NCBI RefSeq assembly: GCF_000143415.4
Contig: NW_003314267.1
Location: 574,817 to 638,816 of the forward strand
Length of the DNA: 64,000 nt
Origin: Selaginella moellendorffii
Taxonomy: Eukaryota > Plantae > Lycopodiophyta
Reading direction: 5' to 3'
The first letter of the stretch is position 1. Every line of letters begins with the position of its first letter. Of the stretch, positions 39,487 to 47,926 are shown one piece after another. A model generated the notes under the pieces. It was not told the origin of the DNA. It made no database searches and was given only the letters and a program-made list of their open reading frames with translations. Both the position numbers and the translations under genes were made by a program.

Positions 39487-39771
39487 AGCCGCGGCTAAAA
39501 AGCCCTAAGCCCCGCGAGGAATATTCGAAATTTGAAAGCCAGATATTTTCCAAAGCCCTTATCTTCATCGGGCGGCCAGAGGCACAAGCCGGAGGACGAT
39601 CCTGGCCGTGGATCCAGGCGGTGGACGGCCGAGATTAAAAGCGTAAGAACCCTAGATAATATCTCGGGCTAAAACCCCTAAAACCCTATAGTCGCTTTCT
39701 CCCATTTTGATTGGCATTGGGTTAAGCCACGGCGCTACTGTCTCTTCCTCCTTGGTTTGGTTTAGGCGATA

Positions 39772-41918
39772 ATGCTGCGGTTGAGGATCCCTCTAGCGCC
39801 CTCTGCCCTTCGTTCCGCCGCTCGAGCGGCAGCAGTAGGCGGTGCCGCCACTCCATCGCCTCCTGCTCGAGGCGCCGCTGCCACTCCGCCGCCGCCGTCG
39901 CCTCGCATCGCCGCTATGGAGGCCGTCTCATGGCCCGCCGCGAGCTGCAGCGTGCCCTTGGTCTCGTCAGGTATGCTCGAGGGAATGCCAGGGTATAGGG
40001 TTTAAGTGTGAGGGTTTTAGAGGAGGAAGAAGAGCAAATGTAGATGCGAATTTGGGGTTTATCCTTTTTGTTGTTGTTGTTCTTGATGTTCTTGTGCGTT
40101 TGTGGTCTCGAGATGCTTTTTCTTTCATGTGCGTTTTTTTCAAGTGATTTTTGTTATTCATGTGCGTTTTTACAGGCTCTGGTCTCAAACAAACGAGTCT
40201 CCAGTCGACTTTTAAGTCCAGCTCGCGAGTTTGGCTTCCCAGACAAGGAGGTCTATCAATGAGAGCTTACTGCGCGGTGGCTAGTGCTGAAGTTGCAGCG
40301 GAGCCTGAGCAAGTTCCACTCAAACCCATTCTCACTCCAGCTCAACAGGCTCTTCAGCCCGCTAAGCCGCCTCCAGCTCGTAAGTTTGTTATCTTCTTTC
40401 TCAGAAGCTCATCTTATTGTTTTTCTTTCAGAGTCTGGAGAAATCGAGCTTGATCCTGAGAAGCTGGCGGAAGAGATGAACACCTGTTCTCCCTTGGAGA
40501 TCATGGATCGTGCGTTGGGAATGTATGGCAATGACATTGCCATCGCTTTTGGGTACGTTTTTGCGACTGCTTTGCAAGTAGTCTCTCATTTGCATTTCCT
40601 CTTTTCGACCAGTGGAGCTGAGGATGTCGCGCTCATTGAGATTGCGCATCAATCCGCGCGACCGTACCGAGTGTTCACGCTGGATACTGGAAGGATGAAT
40701 CCTGAGACGTACCGGTTCTTCACCGAAGTTGAGAGGCATTACAACATCCAAATAGAATATGTTTTCCCGGACGCTGGAGAAGTTGAGAAGTTGACCAAAG
40801 ACAAAGGGATGTTCTCCTTCTACCAGGACGGACACGAAGAGTGCTGCAACATTCGCAGGATCAGGCCTTTGTCAAAGAAGCTGCAGGGCCTTCGCTCCTG
40901 GATCACTGGTCAGCGTCGGGACCAACTCCCAGTTTCTCGTGGAAAATTGCCTGTTGTCCAGGTAAGGAAGCCTCGCAAAATCCTCTTTGTTTCTAATTTT
41001 CTCTTGTTGTGTTTTTCAGATTGATCCATCTTTTGATGGCCGAGATGGTCCAGAAACTCTGCTGAAATGGAACCCACTGGCGAGTATGTCGCATAATGAG
41101 ATCTGGAGATTTCTCACGAACATGAACGTGCCGATCAATGAACTTCATACAAAGGTGATTTTGCTTTCTTTTTCCATTTTGCTTCATGTATTTTGCAGGG
41201 GTTCGCTTCGGTCGGATGTGAGCCTTGCACGAGATCGATCCTCCCATGGCAGCACGAGCGAGAGGGACGGTGGTGGTGGGAGGAAACCAACTCCAAGGAG
41301 CTGGGTATCAACAAGGCAAGTTCTTCTTTCTCTTTGATCTGTGAAAGTTAAAGCTGAACATTGTTCTCTCATACTATCAGGGCAACATGAACAACGTCCG
41401 GCCTTACCGTAGGCAACAAGAATTCGGCGGTGATCTCTACAACAATCCGTCGATCATCAAATTCAGTCGTGAAGAAATGCGAGCTCTCGGCAAGACCACG
41501 TCGCGTGAAAAGTCCGGCGTCGTGTGCCTGTACGCCCCCTGGTGCCCACATTGCCAGGTATCCCGTTTTCTCTTTACAAGTTCTTTCTCGATGTTCTCAC
41601 ATTCTTGATCCTTTTTCCCTTCTCTTCAGGCCATGGATGCCGCATACAAGGAACTCGCCACGAGGCTCGAAGGCACACCAGTCTACGTAAGTAAAAATCG
41701 CATTGTTTTCGCAGAGTAGAATATGATCGATTTTTCCTTTCCAGATTGCCAAGTTCCGTGCCGATGGTGTGAACAAGATGATGTGCCAGCAAGAGCTGAT
41801 GATGACGACGTTCCCGACGATCCTCTTCTTCCCCAAGAACAGCACGAAGTTCATCAAGTATCCATCAGAGCGCAGGGACATCAATTCGCTCCACTCGTTC
41901 GTCATGTCCTTCATGTAG
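39772..41918 (+). CDS. APR: APS reductase-like protein (reductase plus thioredoxin-like domain) with altered active site; start at 39772 or 39916
   Basis: [66 protein letters not shown] and IKYPSERRD lie in spliceable exons. Confidence 0.9.
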
Positions 41919-42567
41919 AAGAGAGAATGGGGCGCTTTAGAGGAGGATTATAGGATTTTGGATGGATAGAGCAACTAATTCTTCGTCCCTGCGCTACTGG
42001 TTTGGTCGAAAGGATGAGTTCCAGTTGGGTGCTATCGATGGTCACTATAATCTAGAGAAGAGTTCTAGATGGTCGCTATAATCTAAAGAGGAATTCCCCA
42101 TAATCTTAGAGAAGAAATCTAGAGCTTATATAATCTTCTGAAGCTTGTTAATCTTTTCGCGCCATCGTGTAGTATATTCTTGTCAACGGTAAGGATATTC
42201 GCCAATTTGAATTAGGCGCGTCACGCGTGGCCGGCCGGCCCGTTGCGATTTCTCCTAGCTACGCGACAAGCGGAGCTCCGCCAAAAGTTAGTAATAGTGA
42301 AATTTTGATGACTTTTAACGTTACTCCACATTTGGCGGACCTCCAGCTTTCCAGCAGTTAAGCGACAACGCGGCTATGTGCGGGTCTAGCTCTTTCTAAG
42401 GTTTAGGGTTCTTCCAAGAAAGCTATTGGATCGCTCTCCAAGCGCCTTCCCTTGCAAATGAGACAGCGATCCGGCAGGGAAATATCTGATATCCGTCGCG
42501 AGGATCGCAAGAGCAGGAAGAAGAGGCGGCGCGGCGTCTTGATTCTTGGAGTTTCTTGGGTTTGGAA

Positions 42568-44568
42568 ATGTATTGTCGATGCGGCTTGTTGTGCGCGGCG
42601 CTGGTGTTATCGGGGATTTTTCTCGTGGATGCCGCCATGCTGGAGCAGGATTTGAGCGCGTTGGTCGCGTTTCGCAATGCCACGGACGCCTCCAATCTTC
42701 TTGGATGGAGCACGCAGCGGGATCCTTGTAGCTGGCAAGGGATTACGTGCATCAACGCCACGATCGGGTCTTCCAACGGCAGTGTAAGTGAAATTCGGGA
42801 AAGAGTATTCAAGATCAATCTCCCGGGCGTGGGGATCTCCGGGGCTGTCCCTGCCGGCGTTCTTGGATCCCTGGACGAGCTCACGGTTCTCAGTCTGAGG
42901 TCGAATCTTCTCTCCGGGCCACTTCCCGGCGATCTCATCAAATGCAGGAAGCTCCGGAGCTTGGTGCTGCAAAGGAACCGATTCACGGGCCCGATTACGT
43001 GGGATTTCCAGTCCTGGCCTCGCTTGGTCCGCGTCGATCTCTCCTACAACACCCTCAACGGAAGCTTGCCGCAGTCTCTAGAGGGCCTTCCACGCATCAA
43101 GATTTTTCTCGTCCAGAACAACTCCTTCACAGGTAAAATTCCGGCAATCCAGCGCGGCAGCTCCATCGTGGATTTCAGCGTCGCCAACAACAGCCTTAGC
43201 GGACAAATCCCACAGACTCTCGCGCAGCTTCCACCACAGGATTTTTCGGGCAACCTTGATCTTTGTGGGAGGCCTCTGGGATTTGTTTGCTCCGCCCCGG
43301 TATCTCCAGAGCCAACTCCAAGCAGGCCGGCAGCGCCAACTCAAACGAAGCCCGGGAGACGACTTAGTCTTGGCGCAATCCTTGCGCTCGTCATTGGCGA
43401 TGTGGCCTTCCTGGCAGTGCTCACGACACTGTTCATGCTGTGCTACTGGCACAAGCAGCACAAGCGGGAGATATCGGCAGCCTCGGCCCGGAGTCCCAAG
43501 CCCAAGGCCGAGGTGAGCAGCTCCGACGATTTCACGAGGGAGTTCTCGAGCTCGGACAAGAGCGCCGAGGCTCAAGCCGGGCAACTGGTCTTCCTCAAGA
43601 CGAGTAAGAACAACTTTAGCCTGGAGGATCTCTTGCGGGCATCGGCGGAGATGATGGGGCAGGGGAGCCTTGGGACGAGCTACAGGGCGGTGCTGGAGGA
43701 CGGGCAAATGGTGGCGGTCAAGAGGATCAAAGGAGTTGAGCTGGGAAGCAAAGAGTTTGAGAAGAGGATGGCGGTGTTTGGAGAGATCGAGCATCAAAAT
43801 CTCCACGTCCCAAGAGCCTACTACTTTTCCAAGACGGAGAAGCTCGTGGTGACGGAGTTCATCCCAATGGGAAGCTTAGCGGCGCAGCTTCATGGTAAGC
43901 AACCCGGATTTCTTTCTCCTCGTCTTTGTATACTAAGTTTTCCTTCAAAAGGTGGTGAGACACAACAGTCGATATCTCTGGACTGGTCCATGCGCCTCCG
44001 GATAGCGCTGGGCGCCGCAAGAGGGATCGCTTGCTTGCACGAGTCGCTGGGTGGCCAAGTAGTGCACGGCGACATCAAATCCTCCAACATTCTCCTCTCG
44101 CGCTCTATGGAAGCCCGGGTGGCGGACTATGGCATCGCCCAGATGCTGGGGCCGGGGTCCGAGTCGGCGTTGGGCCCGGTGGGCTATCGGGCACCGGAGC
44201 TGTCCGCCACCAGGAAGCTCACGCAGCAGTCGGACGTCTACGCGTTTGGGGTGGTGCTGCTGGAGATTCTCACGGGGAAGGCACCGTGGAGGAGCAATCA
44301 CTCGGGCGAGATGCTGGATCTCCCGCGATGGGTCCAGTCGGTTGTCCGGGAGGAGTGGACGGAGGAGGTTTTCGACCAGGGGATCTTGAGGTTCTCGGAG
44401 GAGGAGATGGTGGAGATGCTTCAGATTGCGCTGGTGTGCGTGGCGACGCTGCCAGGGGATCGACCAAAGATGAGAAATGTGGTGAAGATGATCGAAGACG
44501 TGAGGAACTGGGGGACTGGAGGGGAGGAGTTGTCGTCCGAGGAGCTCAAGAGCATGGATCGGCCATGA
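42568..44568 (+). CDS. LRR receptor-like kinase (LRR-III, RKL1/RLK902-like), one 57-bp intron at 43895-43951
   Basis: Signal peptide, PCSWQGITC cap, LRRs and TM helix, then FSLEDLLRASAE, HGDIKSSN, GYRAPE and DLPRWVQSVVREEWT.EVFD. Confidence 0.95.
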   Translation: MYCRCGLLCAALVLSGIFLVDAAMLEQDLSALVAFRNATDASNLLGWSTQRDPCSWQGITCINATIGSSNGSVSEIRERVFKINLPGVGISGAVPAGVLGSLDELTVLSLRSNLLSGPLPGDLIKCRKLRSLVLQRNRFTGPITWDFQSWPRLVRVDLSYNTLNGSLPQSLEGLPRIKIFLVQNNSFTGKIPAIQRGSSIVDFSVANNSLSGQIPQTLAQLPPQDFSGNLDLCGRPLGFVCSAPVSPEPTPSRPAAPTQTKPGRRLSLGAILALVIGDVAFLAVLTTLFMLCYWHKQHKREISAASARSPKPKAEVSSSDDFTREFSSSDKSAEAQAGQLVFLKTSKNNFSLEDLLRASAEMMGQGSLGTSYRAVLEDGQMVAVKRIKGVELGSKEFEKRMAVFGEIEHQNLHVPRAYYFSKTEKLVVTEFIPMGSLAAQLHGKQPGFLSPRLCILSFPSKGGETQQSISLDWSMRLRIALGAARGIACLHESLGGQVVHGDIKSSNILLSRSMEARVADYGIAQMLGPGSESALGPVGYRAPELSATRKLTQQSDVYAFGVVLLEILTGKAPWRSNHSGEMLDLPRWVQSVVREEWTEEVFDQGILRFSEEEMVEMLQIALVCVATLPGDRPKMRNVVKMIEDVRNWGTGGEELSSEELKSMDRP

Positions 44569-44722: not shown

Positions 44723-45187
44723 TTAGTAGAGCTTCTCTTCCTGGTGGGTTTGAATGACCAAATCCGAGACCGGGTATGCCACACAGGTGAGAACGTAGCC
44801 CTGTTTCACCTGGAGATCAGTGAGAAACGTTTGGTCCCTCTGATCCACCTCGCCCAGCTTCACCATGCCCGCGCAAGAAGAACACGCCCCCGATTTGCAC
44901 GAGTAGGGCAGCTCCACGCCCTGCTCCTCCGCGGCATCCAGAATGTAGGAATCCTCGGGCACGCTCAGCACTTTCTCGCCCTCAGGGGTCACCAGCGTTA
45001 CCTTGTAAGCCGCCCAGACGCGAAGCCTCGATCGCCCACCTGGTGGAAGTCGAGCTGGTTGGAATCGCCCACTTGGATCTGGCGATGGAAATCGGACATC
45101 TGGATGGAACCGTGCACTACGATTTGCAAGGCGCCCAATCGCAAATGGATATCGCCCACTTGGAGCTGCTACCAGGGAAGCCGCCAT
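44723..45187 (-). CDS. Plant-type [2Fe-2S] ferredoxin with transit peptide
   Basis: [28 protein letters not shown] and [12 protein letters not shown]; ATG at 45187. Confidence 0.95.
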
Positions 45188-45942
45188 GGCCAAACACAGT
45201 CTTTTAGACAATAGTAGTTTACGGTAATATTCTGTGGCAAACAGTATTGTATTTCGACGCACAAGTTCTACTCGAATCTCTCGCTTCACAGAGGATCTTC
45301 GTAAAATCAAGATTGTAAGTTTTTTTGGATAAAAATGATGGAAGTACTATCAGAGGGAGGTTTCGATCCTCCGACCTGTGGGTTATGGGCCCACTACGCT
45401 TCCGTTGTGCCACTCTGATTTTGTTACATTTTTTAAGATTTACAAATGATTGCATGCGCCTATAGAATATGCCATGTTTAATTAACTATTCGTTTACGTG
45501 CCCAAGCGTTGCTGAGTCTTGCTTATTTAAATAGTGTGGTGAATAATAAACTATTAACTTGTTGGGTTGTAGAGTATGCATCTGATGACCCATTTGAGTG
45601 TCTCGAAGTATAAGTCATACTCCGACCTGTTAAGTTTTTCAAAAAGTTTTTACTTTTCGCTATTTATACCATCTACATCTTTGTTGAGCATAGTCTTCCA
45701 AGTTACTACCACCGGCATTGGACAATCGATCGATGCTGGAAGAATCCCCTTGTATAGTCACACTATCTAATAAGTTCTACGTGGTAGGTGTTTACTATGC
45801 ATGGCGTTGCTCGATTCTTTTGACTGTAGACCATGAATGGACAAAATCTCATTACATGGTAATATTTATAAGGCTGCTTTTAAGCTAGGGCGCGGAGCGG
45901 ACGACACGAGATTGAGAGCTCGGAGGCGCTCCTAGGTAGCAA

Positions 45943-46137
45943 ATGCAGGGCTTGGGAGGAGGGCAGTGCGCTAGCGATGGCGGCACAGCCGCGAGGATTG
46001 CCGATGCTAGAGCCACTCGCTCCACACTGTGCTTGGAGAGAATCGGAGACGTGCAATGGAAATACGTTGCAAAGGGGCAGGTCTTACAGAGCGAGAAATT
46101 GTTTCCTCACCAGAGCGCCCTTGCGGTGAGTCATGCA

Positions 46138-46192
<55 letters not shown>

Positions 46193-47926
46193 CACCTTGT
46201 TCTTCAGGAGATTATGGACTTTGTGCGATCGCATGTTGTGCCGGAAGGCTTTCCGGACAGTGTTCTTCCGTGCTACACGCCTTACATGCAATGGCGATGC
46301 CTCCAGGTAAAAGCTTTTGCTTAGATCGTGTTTTAGACGACAGTGCTGATTTCGTCCAGTATTTCTTTGGAGGTGCCATGGGCGTCTTCACGACCCGGTC
46401 GCTGCTTCATGCTCTTGGTGTCCGGAATGGAGCTTCGTCTTCGGCCATCGCTGTAAACTGGGTTGTCAAGGTCGGTGCTGTGTTATGCAAAACTTTGACG
46501 TAGTTCTAAAACGGGCTTCACTTCATTTCTCAGGATGGTGCTGGCCGAATTGGAAAAATGATTTTTGCTCGGCATGGAAAGAAGTTCGATTGTCACCTTA
46601 AGCAGGTTATCCGTGCAGCGTTTGCTCTTGTGCTTAGTTCTCTGATTCGTGAGTCTTTTACAGATTCGATTTGCTGGTGATGTCTTAATGCAATTAGCTG
46701 CAGCACTGGAACTAGCTACATCTGCCACACCACAATTTTTTCTCCCTCTGGCTTGTATAGCTAACATTGGAAAGGTGTTCTTACCTTGTTTTATTATTTC
46801 TTCTCAAGAGGCTTGGTTTTTTCTTTCGCAGAACGTTGCTGCAGTGGCGTCTACTTCGACTCGAGCACCCATATACAAGGCCTTTGCGCGTCGAGAAAAC
46901 ATTGGAGACATAACTGCAAAAGGAGAGTGTATCGGAAACATTGCGGATCTGGTATGAGAACGAGTTGCAAGGACTGGTAGTTTGCTAACACGCTACTTTT
47001 TAGCTAGGTACTGGCATGGGAATTCTGATGTCCAAAAATTTTCCTGTCTTTGCTCCATTTAGTGCGTTGGCTTTTGGATACGTCTACAGTTCCTTTCGAG
47101 AGGTATTGTTTGCTTTTCTGCGCCTTCGACTGCCTCAACACTCCAATGCAGGTGAAAGCAATTCAGTTGCCGACATTGAACCGGCACAGATTCGGGATTG
47201 CTGTCGACACTTTTCTAGAGACAGGTATTTCAAGTCTGGAAGTCACTTTTGTTTGACATTTTTTCTCTGCAGGGAAAGTTCCAGGTTTGGTTGAAGCAAA
47301 TGAGAGAGAGCGAATTATCGTTGGTCCGCAATGGTCACTAGAGAAACTAGAACTAGGTACCCCCTCTGTTAGTTTTTGGATGCTGTTTGCTGACCGTGGG
47401 AATTTTCTTCAGGCGCACGGGTATCTGATGCCTTCTCTGCTCCTCAAGACTACCAGTACATAGACTCTTTATTTAAGGTGCCTTCTTTATTCACAGTATT
47501 GAATGACACACACACTCTCTTTCTCTCTCTCGCTTTCTCTTTCCAGGGGGAAAACTACCTTGTAAGCTACAATCCTAAACGTCAGCGCACCTATGTTGTT
47601 CTAAAGGAAAGAGCCAACGGTGATGACGTCCTTCGAGCAGCATTTCATGTGAGTGTGCTGAATATTCTGGTCTTTGCTTTCTGATATCAGTAACTTTATG
47701 CAGGGCCAATTGTTCGTCAACATTTTTGATAAATGTTCTTCTGCCGAAGGAGCGTATCAAGAAAGCTGCAAATACATATCTCCCCTCTATGAACATTTCA
47801 AACTCGATGCCGAAAAACTGGTAAAACATTGTGGTTGACGAAGAGGTACTAAAGTTCTATGCTTTCCAGGGCTGGATAATGTCAGAGACGCTATTAAGTC
47901 CTGGAAATGCTCGGGTTTGCACCTGA
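45943..47926 (+). CDS. RUS6: ROOT UVB SENSITIVE (DUF647) family protein, RUS6-like, multi-exon
   Basis: VVPEGFPDSV, FFGGAMGVFTT, KDGAGRIGKM, NVAAVASTSTRAPIYKAFA and ENIGDITAKGEC. Confidence 0.88.
46145..46188. repeat. (CT)n microsatellite in RUS6 intron 1
   Basis: About 22 CT units, seen directly. Confidence 0.95.

Follow-up and report, generated by a model that had tools for sequence, protein, structure and literature searches.

An APS reductase-like gene of Selaginella moellendorffii that retains the [4Fe-4S] ligands and lacks the catalytic cysteine

Selaginella moellendorffii possesses a gene for a plant-type APS reductase (APR)-like protein in which the four cysteine ligands of the [4Fe-4S] cluster are retained and the catalytic cysteine is replaced by leucine. 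The gene is intact, transcribed, correctly spliced and under strong purifying selection, and this pattern, together with the altered catalytic residues and the retained ligands and fold, supports a repurposed pseudo-enzyme, as suggested in an initial annotation of this DNA, over a dead gene. However, the protein evolves fast over its whole length and stands apart as an outlier, and some of its motif changes may reflect relaxed constraint rather than a new role. On balance, we favor the reading that it is the sole FeS-type APR descendant of this plant, a selectively maintained pseudo-reductase that has lost the catalytic cysteine, with APS reduction being carried out by the cluster-free form APR-B. 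In plants, control of sulfate assimilation is generally ascribed to the APS reductase step, and what the [4Fe-4S] cluster contributes to this enzyme has, to our knowledge, yet to be explained.

Gene structure and transcription

The gene lies on the forward strand of the 64-kb stretch of genomic DNA that was analyzed as a whole (the window) and comprises nine exons (Table 1), whose spliced product is identical at every residue to RefSeq XP_002965456.2 (Selaginella moellendorffii). Seven of its introns are of the GT-AG type and one is GC-AG. All eight splice joints are present in RNA-like contigs from runs X4, X7 and X12, which belong to three studies, and one 1668-nt contig of run X7 spans all of them. 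The full-length reductase plus thioredoxin gene described in the initial annotation is thus borne out at the level of both the open reading frame and the spliced mRNA. Further, 17 RNA-like runs (two filed under a second organism label) contain about half of the gene's words, which is the pattern expected of a spliced mRNA. The RNA-like contigs begin at 39685-39691 and run on into Illumina adapter at their 3' end, with a 5' UTR of about 85 nt and a 3' UTR of about 220 nt; there is no upstream ATG within the transcript 5' of the start codon.

The encoded protein displays the plant-type APS reductase architecture, with a long, basic, Ala/Pro/Ser-rich N-terminal presequence of about 135 aa (13 basic versus 4 acidic residues; pLDDT <50) followed by a PAPS_reduct domain and a thioredoxin-like domain. 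The neighboring genes code for an LRR receptor kinase, a ferredoxin, a UVB_sens protein and a DUF1350 protein, with synteny in both haplotypes, and offer no functional lead.

Table 1. Coordinates of the APR-like gene and its motifs in the window
Feature	Coordinates	Strand	Remarks
Transcribed region	39685..42141	+	Extent of the RNA-like contigs
CDS	39772..41918	+	1533-nt ORF, 510 aa, no internal stops; ATG at 39772, TAG ends at 41918
Exon 1	39772..39970	+	Start codon and first part of presequence, aa 1-67
Exon 2	40176..40379	+	Remainder of presequence, aa 67-135; joint 39970/40176 in X4, X7, X12
Exon 3	40432..40552	+	N-terminal helix of reductase domain, ends AFG(G)
Exon 4	40613..40961	+	PAPS_reduct core: LDTG, DGHEECC, CCNIRR, altered Arg-loop QLPVSR; Pfam PF01507, E 1.2e-24
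CC of DGHEECC	40842..40847	+	[4Fe-4S] ligands
Arg codon of CCNIRRI	40857..40859	+	Cluster-adjacent Lys to Arg
Exon 5	41020..41154	+	End of PAPS_reduct core; Pfam PF01507, E 5.6e-07; joints in RNA-like contigs
Exon 6	41199..41315	+	CEPC, substrate-binding stretch (10 residues), tail motif KELGINK
CEPC	41217..41228	+	[4Fe-4S] ligands
ELGIN codons	41298..41312	+	GAG CTG GGT ATC AAC, at the ECGLH position
Intron 6	41316..41380	+	GC-AG, donor AAG|GCAAGT, immediately 3' of ELGINK codons; joint in X4, X7, X12
Exon 7	41381..41557	+	Divergent linker, start of thioredoxin-like domain, ends WCPHCQ
C5 run	41535..41539	+	Site of apparent 1-nt deletion in DNA sample S1
CPHC codons	41543..41554	+	Thioredoxin motif
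Exon 8	41630..41686	+	Thioredoxin-like domain; joints in RNA-like contigs
Exon 9	41745..41918	+	End of thioredoxin-like domain and stop codon, 174 nt

Altered and retained active-site residues

The motif ECGLH, which bears the catalytic cysteine, reads ELGIN in this protein, with substitutions of Cys371 by Leu, Leu373 by Ile and His374 by Asn; all of the approximately 260 other homologs covering the site have ECGLH or a cysteine-keeping variant of it. Three further deviations named in the initial annotation are likewise present in the letters. The P-loop, FSG or CSG in 321/321 homologs and FGG in none of them, reads AFGG, with intron 3 splitting the affected codon 175 (S175G). The lysine of the CCxxRK motif, kept in all of the approximately 380 homologs counted (a tally of the 15 commonest variants), is an arginine in CCNIRRI. 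The thioredoxin motif, C-x-[FY]-C in 214/215 homologs, reads WCPHC, with CPHC found in 0/215. Among the fetched homologs, AFGG, CCNIRR, QLPVSR and CPHC are each unique to this protein, and its motif deviation is far beyond chance. The changes had been described as targeted to the active site: several catalytic and substrate-positioning residues are indeed altered, but the changes are not confined there, with 40/200 near-invariant plant APR columns altered and most of the substitutions being conservative and scattered over both domains. New cysteines have replaced the Ala, Val and Ala of canonical APRs at positions 153, 424 and 467, respectively; none occurs in the tail from residue 347 to residue 423.

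All four cluster ligands (C252, C253, C343 and C346) are retained, in agreement with the initial annotation, and occupy invariant columns; on this basis the protein is predicted to bind the cluster. R357, R360 and W361-363 of exon 6 are likewise kept in invariant columns. Overall, 64/74 universally conserved reductase-domain columns are retained, including, besides the ligands, LDTG and the equivalents of Arg171, Arg242 and Arg245 of the Pseudomonas aeruginosa enzyme; the 10 altered ones include Cys256, Leu258, His259, Lys144 and Ser62 (P. aeruginosa numbering). Among the residues contacting APS, whose roles are taken from the bacterial enzymes (PMC8173546), the equivalents of Leu85, Gly161, Arg171, Arg242 and Arg245 are kept, and Ser62, Lys144 and His259 are replaced by Gly, Arg and Asn. 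The latter three residues serve to position the APS and may also activate the cysteine, in an active site that forms a deep cavity closed by the C-terminal tail (PMC8173546). In the M. tuberculosis enzyme, the C249S substitution abolishes activity and no intermediate is formed, K145A leaves both activity and binding low, and H252A reduces the affinity (PMC8173546). The essentiality of the cysteine lost here follows from the C249S data, and by homology with these mutants the Selaginella protein would have lost its APS reductase activity.

The fold itself appears well preserved. The reductase domain matches 2goy_A with E 1.3e-81 over 250 residues and the thioredoxin-like domain matches 5yry_A with E 6e-34, PDI domains also being matched. 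In the AF2 model, the reductase core and the thioredoxin-like domain are confident (pLDDT 87-97 for the latter), and Foldseek gives target-normalized TM-scores (TMt) of 0.82 against 2goy and 0.88 against 5yry.

Relationship to known sulfonucleotide reductases

The closest known relatives are the plant-type APRs (Arabidopsis APR1-3; TIGR00424; EC 1.8.4.9), which share the PP-loop reductase domain, both cysteine pairs of the CC...CxxC ligand set and the C-terminal thioredoxin/glutaredoxin-like domain with a CxxC motif. The best structural match of the reductase domain is 2goy, and that of the redox domain is 5yry, from AtAPR1. In contrast to the plant-type APRs, the Selaginella protein has Leu for the catalytic Cys (K-E-L-G-I-N), Asn for the motif His, Arg for the cluster-adjacent Lys, Gly for the P-loop Ser, an Arg-loop reading QLPVSR, CPHC as the CxxC, and a presequence of about 135 aa. 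It scores 523.1 bits with TIGR00424, below the curated equivalog cut-off of 553.2, and 214.2 with TIGR02055, below that of 235.3, whereas the Diphasiastrum APR passes both (665.2 and 237.9). Its scores with the PAPS reductase (CysH type) models TIGR00434 and TIGR02057 are far below their cut-offs; it also differs from that type in having the cluster ligands and in the absence of the cysteine. As a member of an enzyme family that has lost an essential catalytic residue, yet is expressed and under purifying selection (although one sample may carry a frameshift allele), it would qualify as a pseudo-enzyme in an operational sense.

The bacterial [4Fe-4S] APS reductases (P. aeruginosa 2goy; M. tuberculosis CysH 7lhr) share the cluster ligands, LDTG, Arg171, Arg242 and Arg245 with the Selaginella protein, but none has a fused thioredoxin domain, and Cys256/249, His259/252 and Lys144/145, whose mutation abolishes or severely impairs activity, are present in every one (PMC8173546). 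APR-B, known from Physcomitrium patens, Selaginella and Marchantia (PDB 4bwv), is likewise a sulfonucleotide reductase homolog of these plant lineages and a variant whose cofactor and motifs differ from the canonical set; the sequence similarity to 4bwv is distant (E 5.5e-12). APR-B, which reduces APS, is defined by the absence of the FeS ligands, the absence of the thioredoxin domain and the retention of the catalytic cysteine (PMC2275785; PMC11350084). All three features are reversed here, which agrees with the earlier characterization of APR-B as the opposite pattern. Our literature searches recovered no published description of the cysteine loss seen here.

[quoted passage not shown] CxHC motifs are typical of PDI (CGHC) and DsbA (CPHC).

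Descent and other APR genes of Selaginella

The intron positions establish that the gene is a vertical descendant of the land-plant [4Fe-4S]-type APR: five of the seven introns of the Marchantia APR are at the same column and phase, including the counterpart of the GC-AG intron 6, and exons 4 (349 nt) and 9 (174 nt) equal their Marchantia counterparts in length; the intron preceding exon 8 is absent from the Marchantia gene. The protein is nevertheless a long-branch outlier, with 56-59% identity to plant APRs versus 82% among those themselves, the highest divergence of the land-plant APRs examined and a branch length about equal to that of the green-algal APRs. FastTree places it outside the other land plants with a branch of 0.84 and weak support; as this position probably reflects long-branch attraction, we draw no placement from it.

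We searched with exons 3-4 against 1.84 billion cluster representatives and with the full protein against 5.8 billion proteins, and also used residues 285-445 as a query meant to catch fragments. The ELGIN-type orthologs that the initial annotation proposed to look for did not emerge from these protein collections: the closest match listed has 61% identity (51% with the fragment query), and the matches listed include no other Cys-less sequence and no ortholog from another Selaginella species. Similarly, the best 120 matches to a Diphasiastrum APR query contain no canonical S. moellendorffii APR, nor do the top matches of the full-protein search. The published inventory gives '1+1a' for the APRs of S. 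moellendorffii, where 'a' denotes no FeS sites, that is, one FeS-type APR plus one APR-B (PMC2275785); Selaginella APR data are absent from the supplement of PMC9426629. Judging from the top-120 lists and the 2008 inventory, the present gene is apparently the only [4Fe-4S]-type copy in the species. The check for a canonical APR elsewhere in the genome that the initial annotation called for yielded none among the best matches, and with the inventory giving a single FeS-type APR, its proposal of a regulatory partner of such an enzyme has no basis in this genome; only APR-B or some other enzyme could be the partner.

Selection and alternative explanations

A trivial explanation of the cysteine loss, namely an artefact of assembly, sequencing or annotation, or a cysteine that returns in the mRNA through editing or the use of another exon, is vanishingly improbable, and nothing was found in its support. 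The ELGIN codons are identical in the two assembled haplotypes and in the contigs of RNA runs X4, X7 and X12, and the motif is shared by a third, divergent and independent DNA sample; DNA run X1 shows only synonymous changes within them (41303 G>A and 41306 T>C). Turning CTG into TGY takes two substitutions and is not what C-to-U editing does, and the 64-kb window contains no other segment coding for ECG[LI]H. On these data, we rejected this explanation. A different concern is that the gene is in early decay, having become redundant once APR-B took over and now drifting to a pseudogene, with transcription persisting only because the promoter is intact. The loss of essential catalytic residues and the extreme divergence are compatible with this, as is an apparent 1-nt deletion in DNA sample S1 (runs X1-X3), which would shift the frame just before CPHC and, if real, would make at least the redox domain dispensable in that plant; moreover, judging by how reference B9 of PMC2275785 is titled, the moss tolerates a knock-out of the FeS-type APR. 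However, the coding polymorphism comprises 16 synonymous and 3 non-synonymous changes (pN/pS about 0.06), with 3/19 non-synonymous where neutrality would predict about 77%, and the ratio is 13 to 1 in the mature protein and still 6 to 1 for those SNPs that only the sample with the apparent frameshift has. The 510-codon frame is clean in both haplotypes, with no exon indels between them, the eight splice sites work, and when the excess divergence was simulated under neutrality, 98% of trials produced one or more stops. Strong purifying selection therefore acts on the gene, and we give decay little credence.

Could the constraint instead reflect continued APS reduction with a relocated nucleophile, wherein glutathione or the first cysteine of CPHC attacks the sulfate of bound APS directly and the tail cysteine is dispensable, reminiscent of the old 'APS sulfotransferase' idea? 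The retention of the cluster ligands, LDTG, the Arg-loop arginine and the RxGRWWWE sulfate-binding motif would fit such an enzyme, as would the CPHC change, which may have co-evolved, and the purifying selection; if this is the sole FeS-type APR, a retained enzymatic function offers a simple reason for it. Set against this, the Lys144, His259 and Ser62 equivalents have also changed, which is unexpected if APS turnover were retained, the tail provides no substitute cysteine, attack by a separate domain on a deep, tail-closed cavity is sterically hard, and APR-B is, by the published accounts, available for the pathway; we consider it improbable. There is a similarly small chance that the PP-loop nucleotide fold and the cluster now serve a different reaction or substrate. 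The long branch, the numerous substitutions around the ligand pocket that are unique to this protein, the three new cysteines and the strong present-day constraint are consistent with such neo-functionalization, but there is no positive sign of any particular chemistry, the substitutions are mostly conservative and spread over both domains, and the new motifs occur in no homolog, so that there is no derived family for comparison.

A possible non-reductive role for the APR scaffold

Returning to the pseudo-reductase that we favor, we propose that with the loss of the cysteine carrying the S-sulfo intermediate, along with the neighboring His and the cluster-linked Lys, canonical APS reduction would no longer be possible. 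As the gene is transcribed, correctly spliced and under strong purifying selection, the Cys-less protein would nonetheless have a function. The likeliest one is that of a pseudo-reductase that still folds, probably retains the cluster along with an adenine nucleotide, and might exert its effect by binding and by means of its altered, DsbA-like CPHC redox domain rather than by sulfite production; assimilatory APS reduction in S. moellendorffii would then fall to the cluster-free APR-B. A more specific version, which we regard as tentative and rather doubtful, is that the ancestral FeS APR, with its [4Fe-4S] cluster, nucleotide pocket and DsbA-like CPHC domain, was turned into a non-reducing but selected plastid APS/redox sensor or thiol oxidoreductase, with sulfate reduction proceeding entirely via APR-B. 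The Fe-S/nucleotide or redox sensor roles raised in the initial annotation are likewise speculative.

If the more specific version holds, this would be the first natural form of APS reductase with the cluster kept and the nucleophile lost, and a natural tool for separating the unexplained role of the cluster from catalysis. The favored reading would offer a ready-made separation-of-function variant for studies of cluster and nucleotide binding. It would also imply that a model vascular plant depends on APR-B alone for sulfate reduction, which would alter the reading of the '1+1a' inventory (Patron et al., 2008), and would suggest a second, non-reductive and testable function of the APR scaffold. 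The automatic annotation of the product as '5'-adenylylsulfate reductase 3, chloroplastic' would then also over-call its function.

Structure and expression of the APR-like gene

The gene encoding the APS reductase (APR)-like protein comprises nine exons, whose joined ORF of 1533 nt specifies a 510-amino-acid product corresponding to RefSeq XP_002965456.2 ("5'-adenylylsulfate reductase 3, chloroplastic", Selaginella moellendorffii). Seven of its introns are GT-AG, and intron 6, directly 3' of the ELGINK codons, is GC-AG with a textbook donor (AAG/GCAAGT); it matches a Marchantia APR intron in position and phase and is removed in all RNA contigs. The motifs reported in the initial annotation (ELGIN, DGHEECC, CEPC, AFGG, CCNIRRI, and WCPHC) are all in place, and the full-length splicing that it described is borne out at the mRNA level: the eight joints are seen in contigs from RNA-like runs of three studies, with a single 1668-nt contig of one of these (X7) containing all of them and spanning 39691-41971. 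Seventeen RNA-like runs (two under a second organism label) contain about half of the sampled words, which is the share expected for spliced mRNA. A nearly identical spliced transcript occurs in RNA-like runs X12 and X16, labelled as a different organism ("organism B"), suggesting that the sample was mislabelled or mixed.

ECGLH is restored neither in RNA nor in other DNA: the ELGIN codons of the RNA contigs are identical to the window DNA, ELGIN is likewise read in the second assembled haplotype (GL377754.1, protein XP_002994181.2), and a third, more divergent DNA sample (run X1) has only two differences within the motif, both synonymous (CTG to CTA and GGT to GGC). As far as these data reach, RNA editing, an alternative ECGLH exon, and an artefact are excluded, with the chance that an assembly or sequencing error explains ELGIN being practically negligible.

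Features of the APR-like locus and its downstream neighbours
Feature	Position	Strand
Telo-box motifs	39640-39700	
Transcript start (RNA contigs)	39685-39691	
APR-like CDS	39772-41918	+
Exon 1	39772-39970	+
Exon 2	40176-40379	+
Exon 3	40432-40552	+
Exon 4	40613-40961	+
Exon 5	41020-41154	+
Exon 6	41199-41315	+
ELGIN codons	41298-41312	+
Intron 6 (GC-AG)	41316-41380	+
Exon 7	41381-41557	+
C5 run	41535-41539	
Exon 8	41630-41686	+
Exon 9	41745-41918	+
3' UTR motif copies	42040-42125	
LRR receptor-like kinase, intron-poor	42556-44568	+
2Fe-2S ferredoxin (Fer2, E 2.8e-20)	44723-45310	-
UVB_sens/DUF647-type gene	45943-46503	+

The product combines a Pfam PAPS_reduct domain (exons 3-5) with a thioredoxin domain starting in exon 7. 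The nearest solved structures are the Pseudomonas aeruginosa [4Fe-4S] APS reductase for residues 125-379 (2goy, E 1e-81) and the C-terminal redox domain of Arabidopsis APR1 for residues 399-507 (5yry, E 6e-34). AlphaFold2 models both domains confidently (Foldseek target-normalised TM-scores of 0.82 to 2goy and 0.88 to 5yry), confidence being low over the first ~135 residues and in the cluster/tail segment 344-389. Three additional cysteines replace the Ala, Val, and Ala of canonical plant APRs at codons 153, 424, and 467 (exons 3, 7, and 9); the second of them, C424, precedes CPHC by six residues.

Active-site substitutions

We tallied the motifs over all relatives fetched from two large protein collections.

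Motifs of the APR-like protein and its relatives
Site	Relatives	APR-like protein
Catalytic cysteine	kept in all ~260 covering the site	Leu
P-loop	FSG or CSG, 321/321	FGG
Lys of CCxxRK	all ~380 counted (15 commonest variants tallied)	Arg (CCNIRR)
Arg-loop	QSPGTR or close variants	QLPVSR
Redox motif	C-x-F/Y-C, 214/215	CPHC

Alignment to 2goy (P. aeruginosa numbering) identifies Ser62Gly, Lys144Arg, Ser167Leu, Gly169Val, Cys256Leu, Leu258Ile, and His259Asn as changes, with Cys139/140/228/231, Leu85, Gly161, Arg171, Arg242, and Arg245 retained. The predicted protein has other residues in place of the catalytic Cys, the motif His, and the cluster-linked Lys, but it keeps its cluster ligands, the majority of the nucleotide contacts, and a redox-active CxxC. 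Across 74 columns conserved in bacterial and plant FeS-type (canonical [4Fe-4S]) enzymes, 64 are kept and 10 changed, five of the latter being among the changes listed above from the 2goy alignment. In the Mycobacterium tuberculosis enzyme, C249S abolishes activity and the thiosulfonate intermediate, K145A leaves low activity with reduced substrate binding, and H252A lowers substrate affinity (PMC8173546). The protein falls below the cut-offs of the NCBI curated models for plant APS reductase (equivalog; 523.1 against 553.2) and FeS APS reductases (subfamily; 214.2 against 235.3), both of which are passed by the APR of another lycophyte, Diphasiastrum.

Divergence, descent, and selection

By sequence comparison, the protein is a long-branch outlier whose divergence extends beyond the active site. 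Its mature region has a mean identity of 56% to 169 plant APRs, which share 82% among themselves, and 40 of 200 near-invariant plant columns are changed, as against at most five in other land plants and 38-41 in two green-algal sequences. Compared with the land-plant consensus, the reductase core is 65% identical and the Trx domain 51% (Diphasiastrum: 81% and 62%), with many of the substitutions conservative (L/M, K/R, V/I, E/D, S/T). A FastTree phylogeny puts it, with weak support, on a long branch (0.84) outside other land plants, which we take as probable long-branch attraction. Gene structure gives the better demonstration of descent from the land-plant APR gene: five of the seven Marchantia APR introns share alignment column and phase with it, and matching exons measure 349/349, 138/135, 117/117, and 174/174 nt (Marchantia/S. 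moellendorffii).

The two haplotypes differ by 11 exon substitutions, nine of them synonymous, and by no exon indels, against ~20 substitutions and three indel positions in 614 nt of intron. The two amino-acid differences are Q135E (40379, where exon 2 ends) and V341I (41211); Ile341 of the other allele is the residue of all canonical APRs. Adding public-run variants gives 16 synonymous and three non-synonymous coding polymorphisms (pN/pS ~0.06); two of the latter, A47V and Q135E, fall in the presequence, and the third, V341I, is conservative. For the 15:1 subset, against a neutral expectation of 77% non-synonymous, p = 4e-9. Since every allele carries ELGIN, this constraint acted on the cysteine-less protein. 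In a crude neutral simulation of the excess 16% amino-acid divergence, at least one stop arose in 98% of trials. This land-plant APR orthologue is intact, expressed, and selectively constrained.

That the gene is instead in early decay is improbable. One observation runs counter to this selection evidence. At full depth, the X1 contig covering exon 7 is one C short in the C5 run, and none of the three sampled words spanning the run is present in X1-X3, runs of the same sample. If real, the deletion would cause a frameshift immediately before CPHC in that plant and may be a natural truncation allele; a homopolymer error is another possible explanation, no library type being recorded. Of the SNPs private to this sample, six are synonymous and one is non-synonymous, so any such frameshift would be recent.

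Functional interpretation

The loss of the catalytic cysteine is real and makes this a variant of a known enzyme kind, of which we found no mention in the searchable literature. From established enzymology, we infer that the protein would be unable to form the Cys-S-sulfonate intermediate and hence would not count as a canonical APS reductase. The initial annotation called for a check on a canonical APR elsewhere in the genome; no other S. moellendorffii APR is among the best 120 matches of either this protein or the Diphasiastrum APR, those of the latter including liverwort, moss, fern, gymnosperm, and Amborella APRs at ~70% identity. The published S. moellendorffii inventory of "1+1a" APRs, "a" denoting those without FeS binding sites, i.e., APR-B (Patron et al., 2008, Table 1; PMC2275785), implies that the window gene is most probably the single FeS-type APR counted there. 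The same paper states that APS is reduced by the S. lepidophylla APR-B (PMC2275785). Going by the inventory, APR-B would supply sulfite in S. moellendorffii. Its taking over of this supply would have freed the FeS-type gene for change.

We moderately favor a pseudo-reductase retained for another role. The repurposed pseudo-enzyme of the initial annotation is the best-supported reading, but the partnership with a canonical APR suggested alongside it is without basis in this genome. Our best guess is that the pseudo-reductase would hold the cluster and an adenine nucleotide, and act by binding and via its CPHC domain. CPHC is a DsbA-type motif, more oxidising than the glutaredoxin-like CPFC. Continued reduction of APS, with an external or the CPHC thiol as nucleophile, is unlikely. 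The use of the old fold for a new chemistry is rather doubtful.

Genomic neighborhood

The neighbours, the same set in both haplotypes, are a DUF1350 gene and the LRR kinase, ferredoxin, and UVB_sens genes, the last three in the same order in the other haplotype (L001); they give no functional hint and have no evident link to the APR-like gene. Around the transcript start and immediately 5' of it lie telo-box motifs resembling telomere repeats (AAACCCTA / AACCCTAG), and the 3' UTR carries three to four loose copies of the short motif ATAATCT[AT]AGAG...
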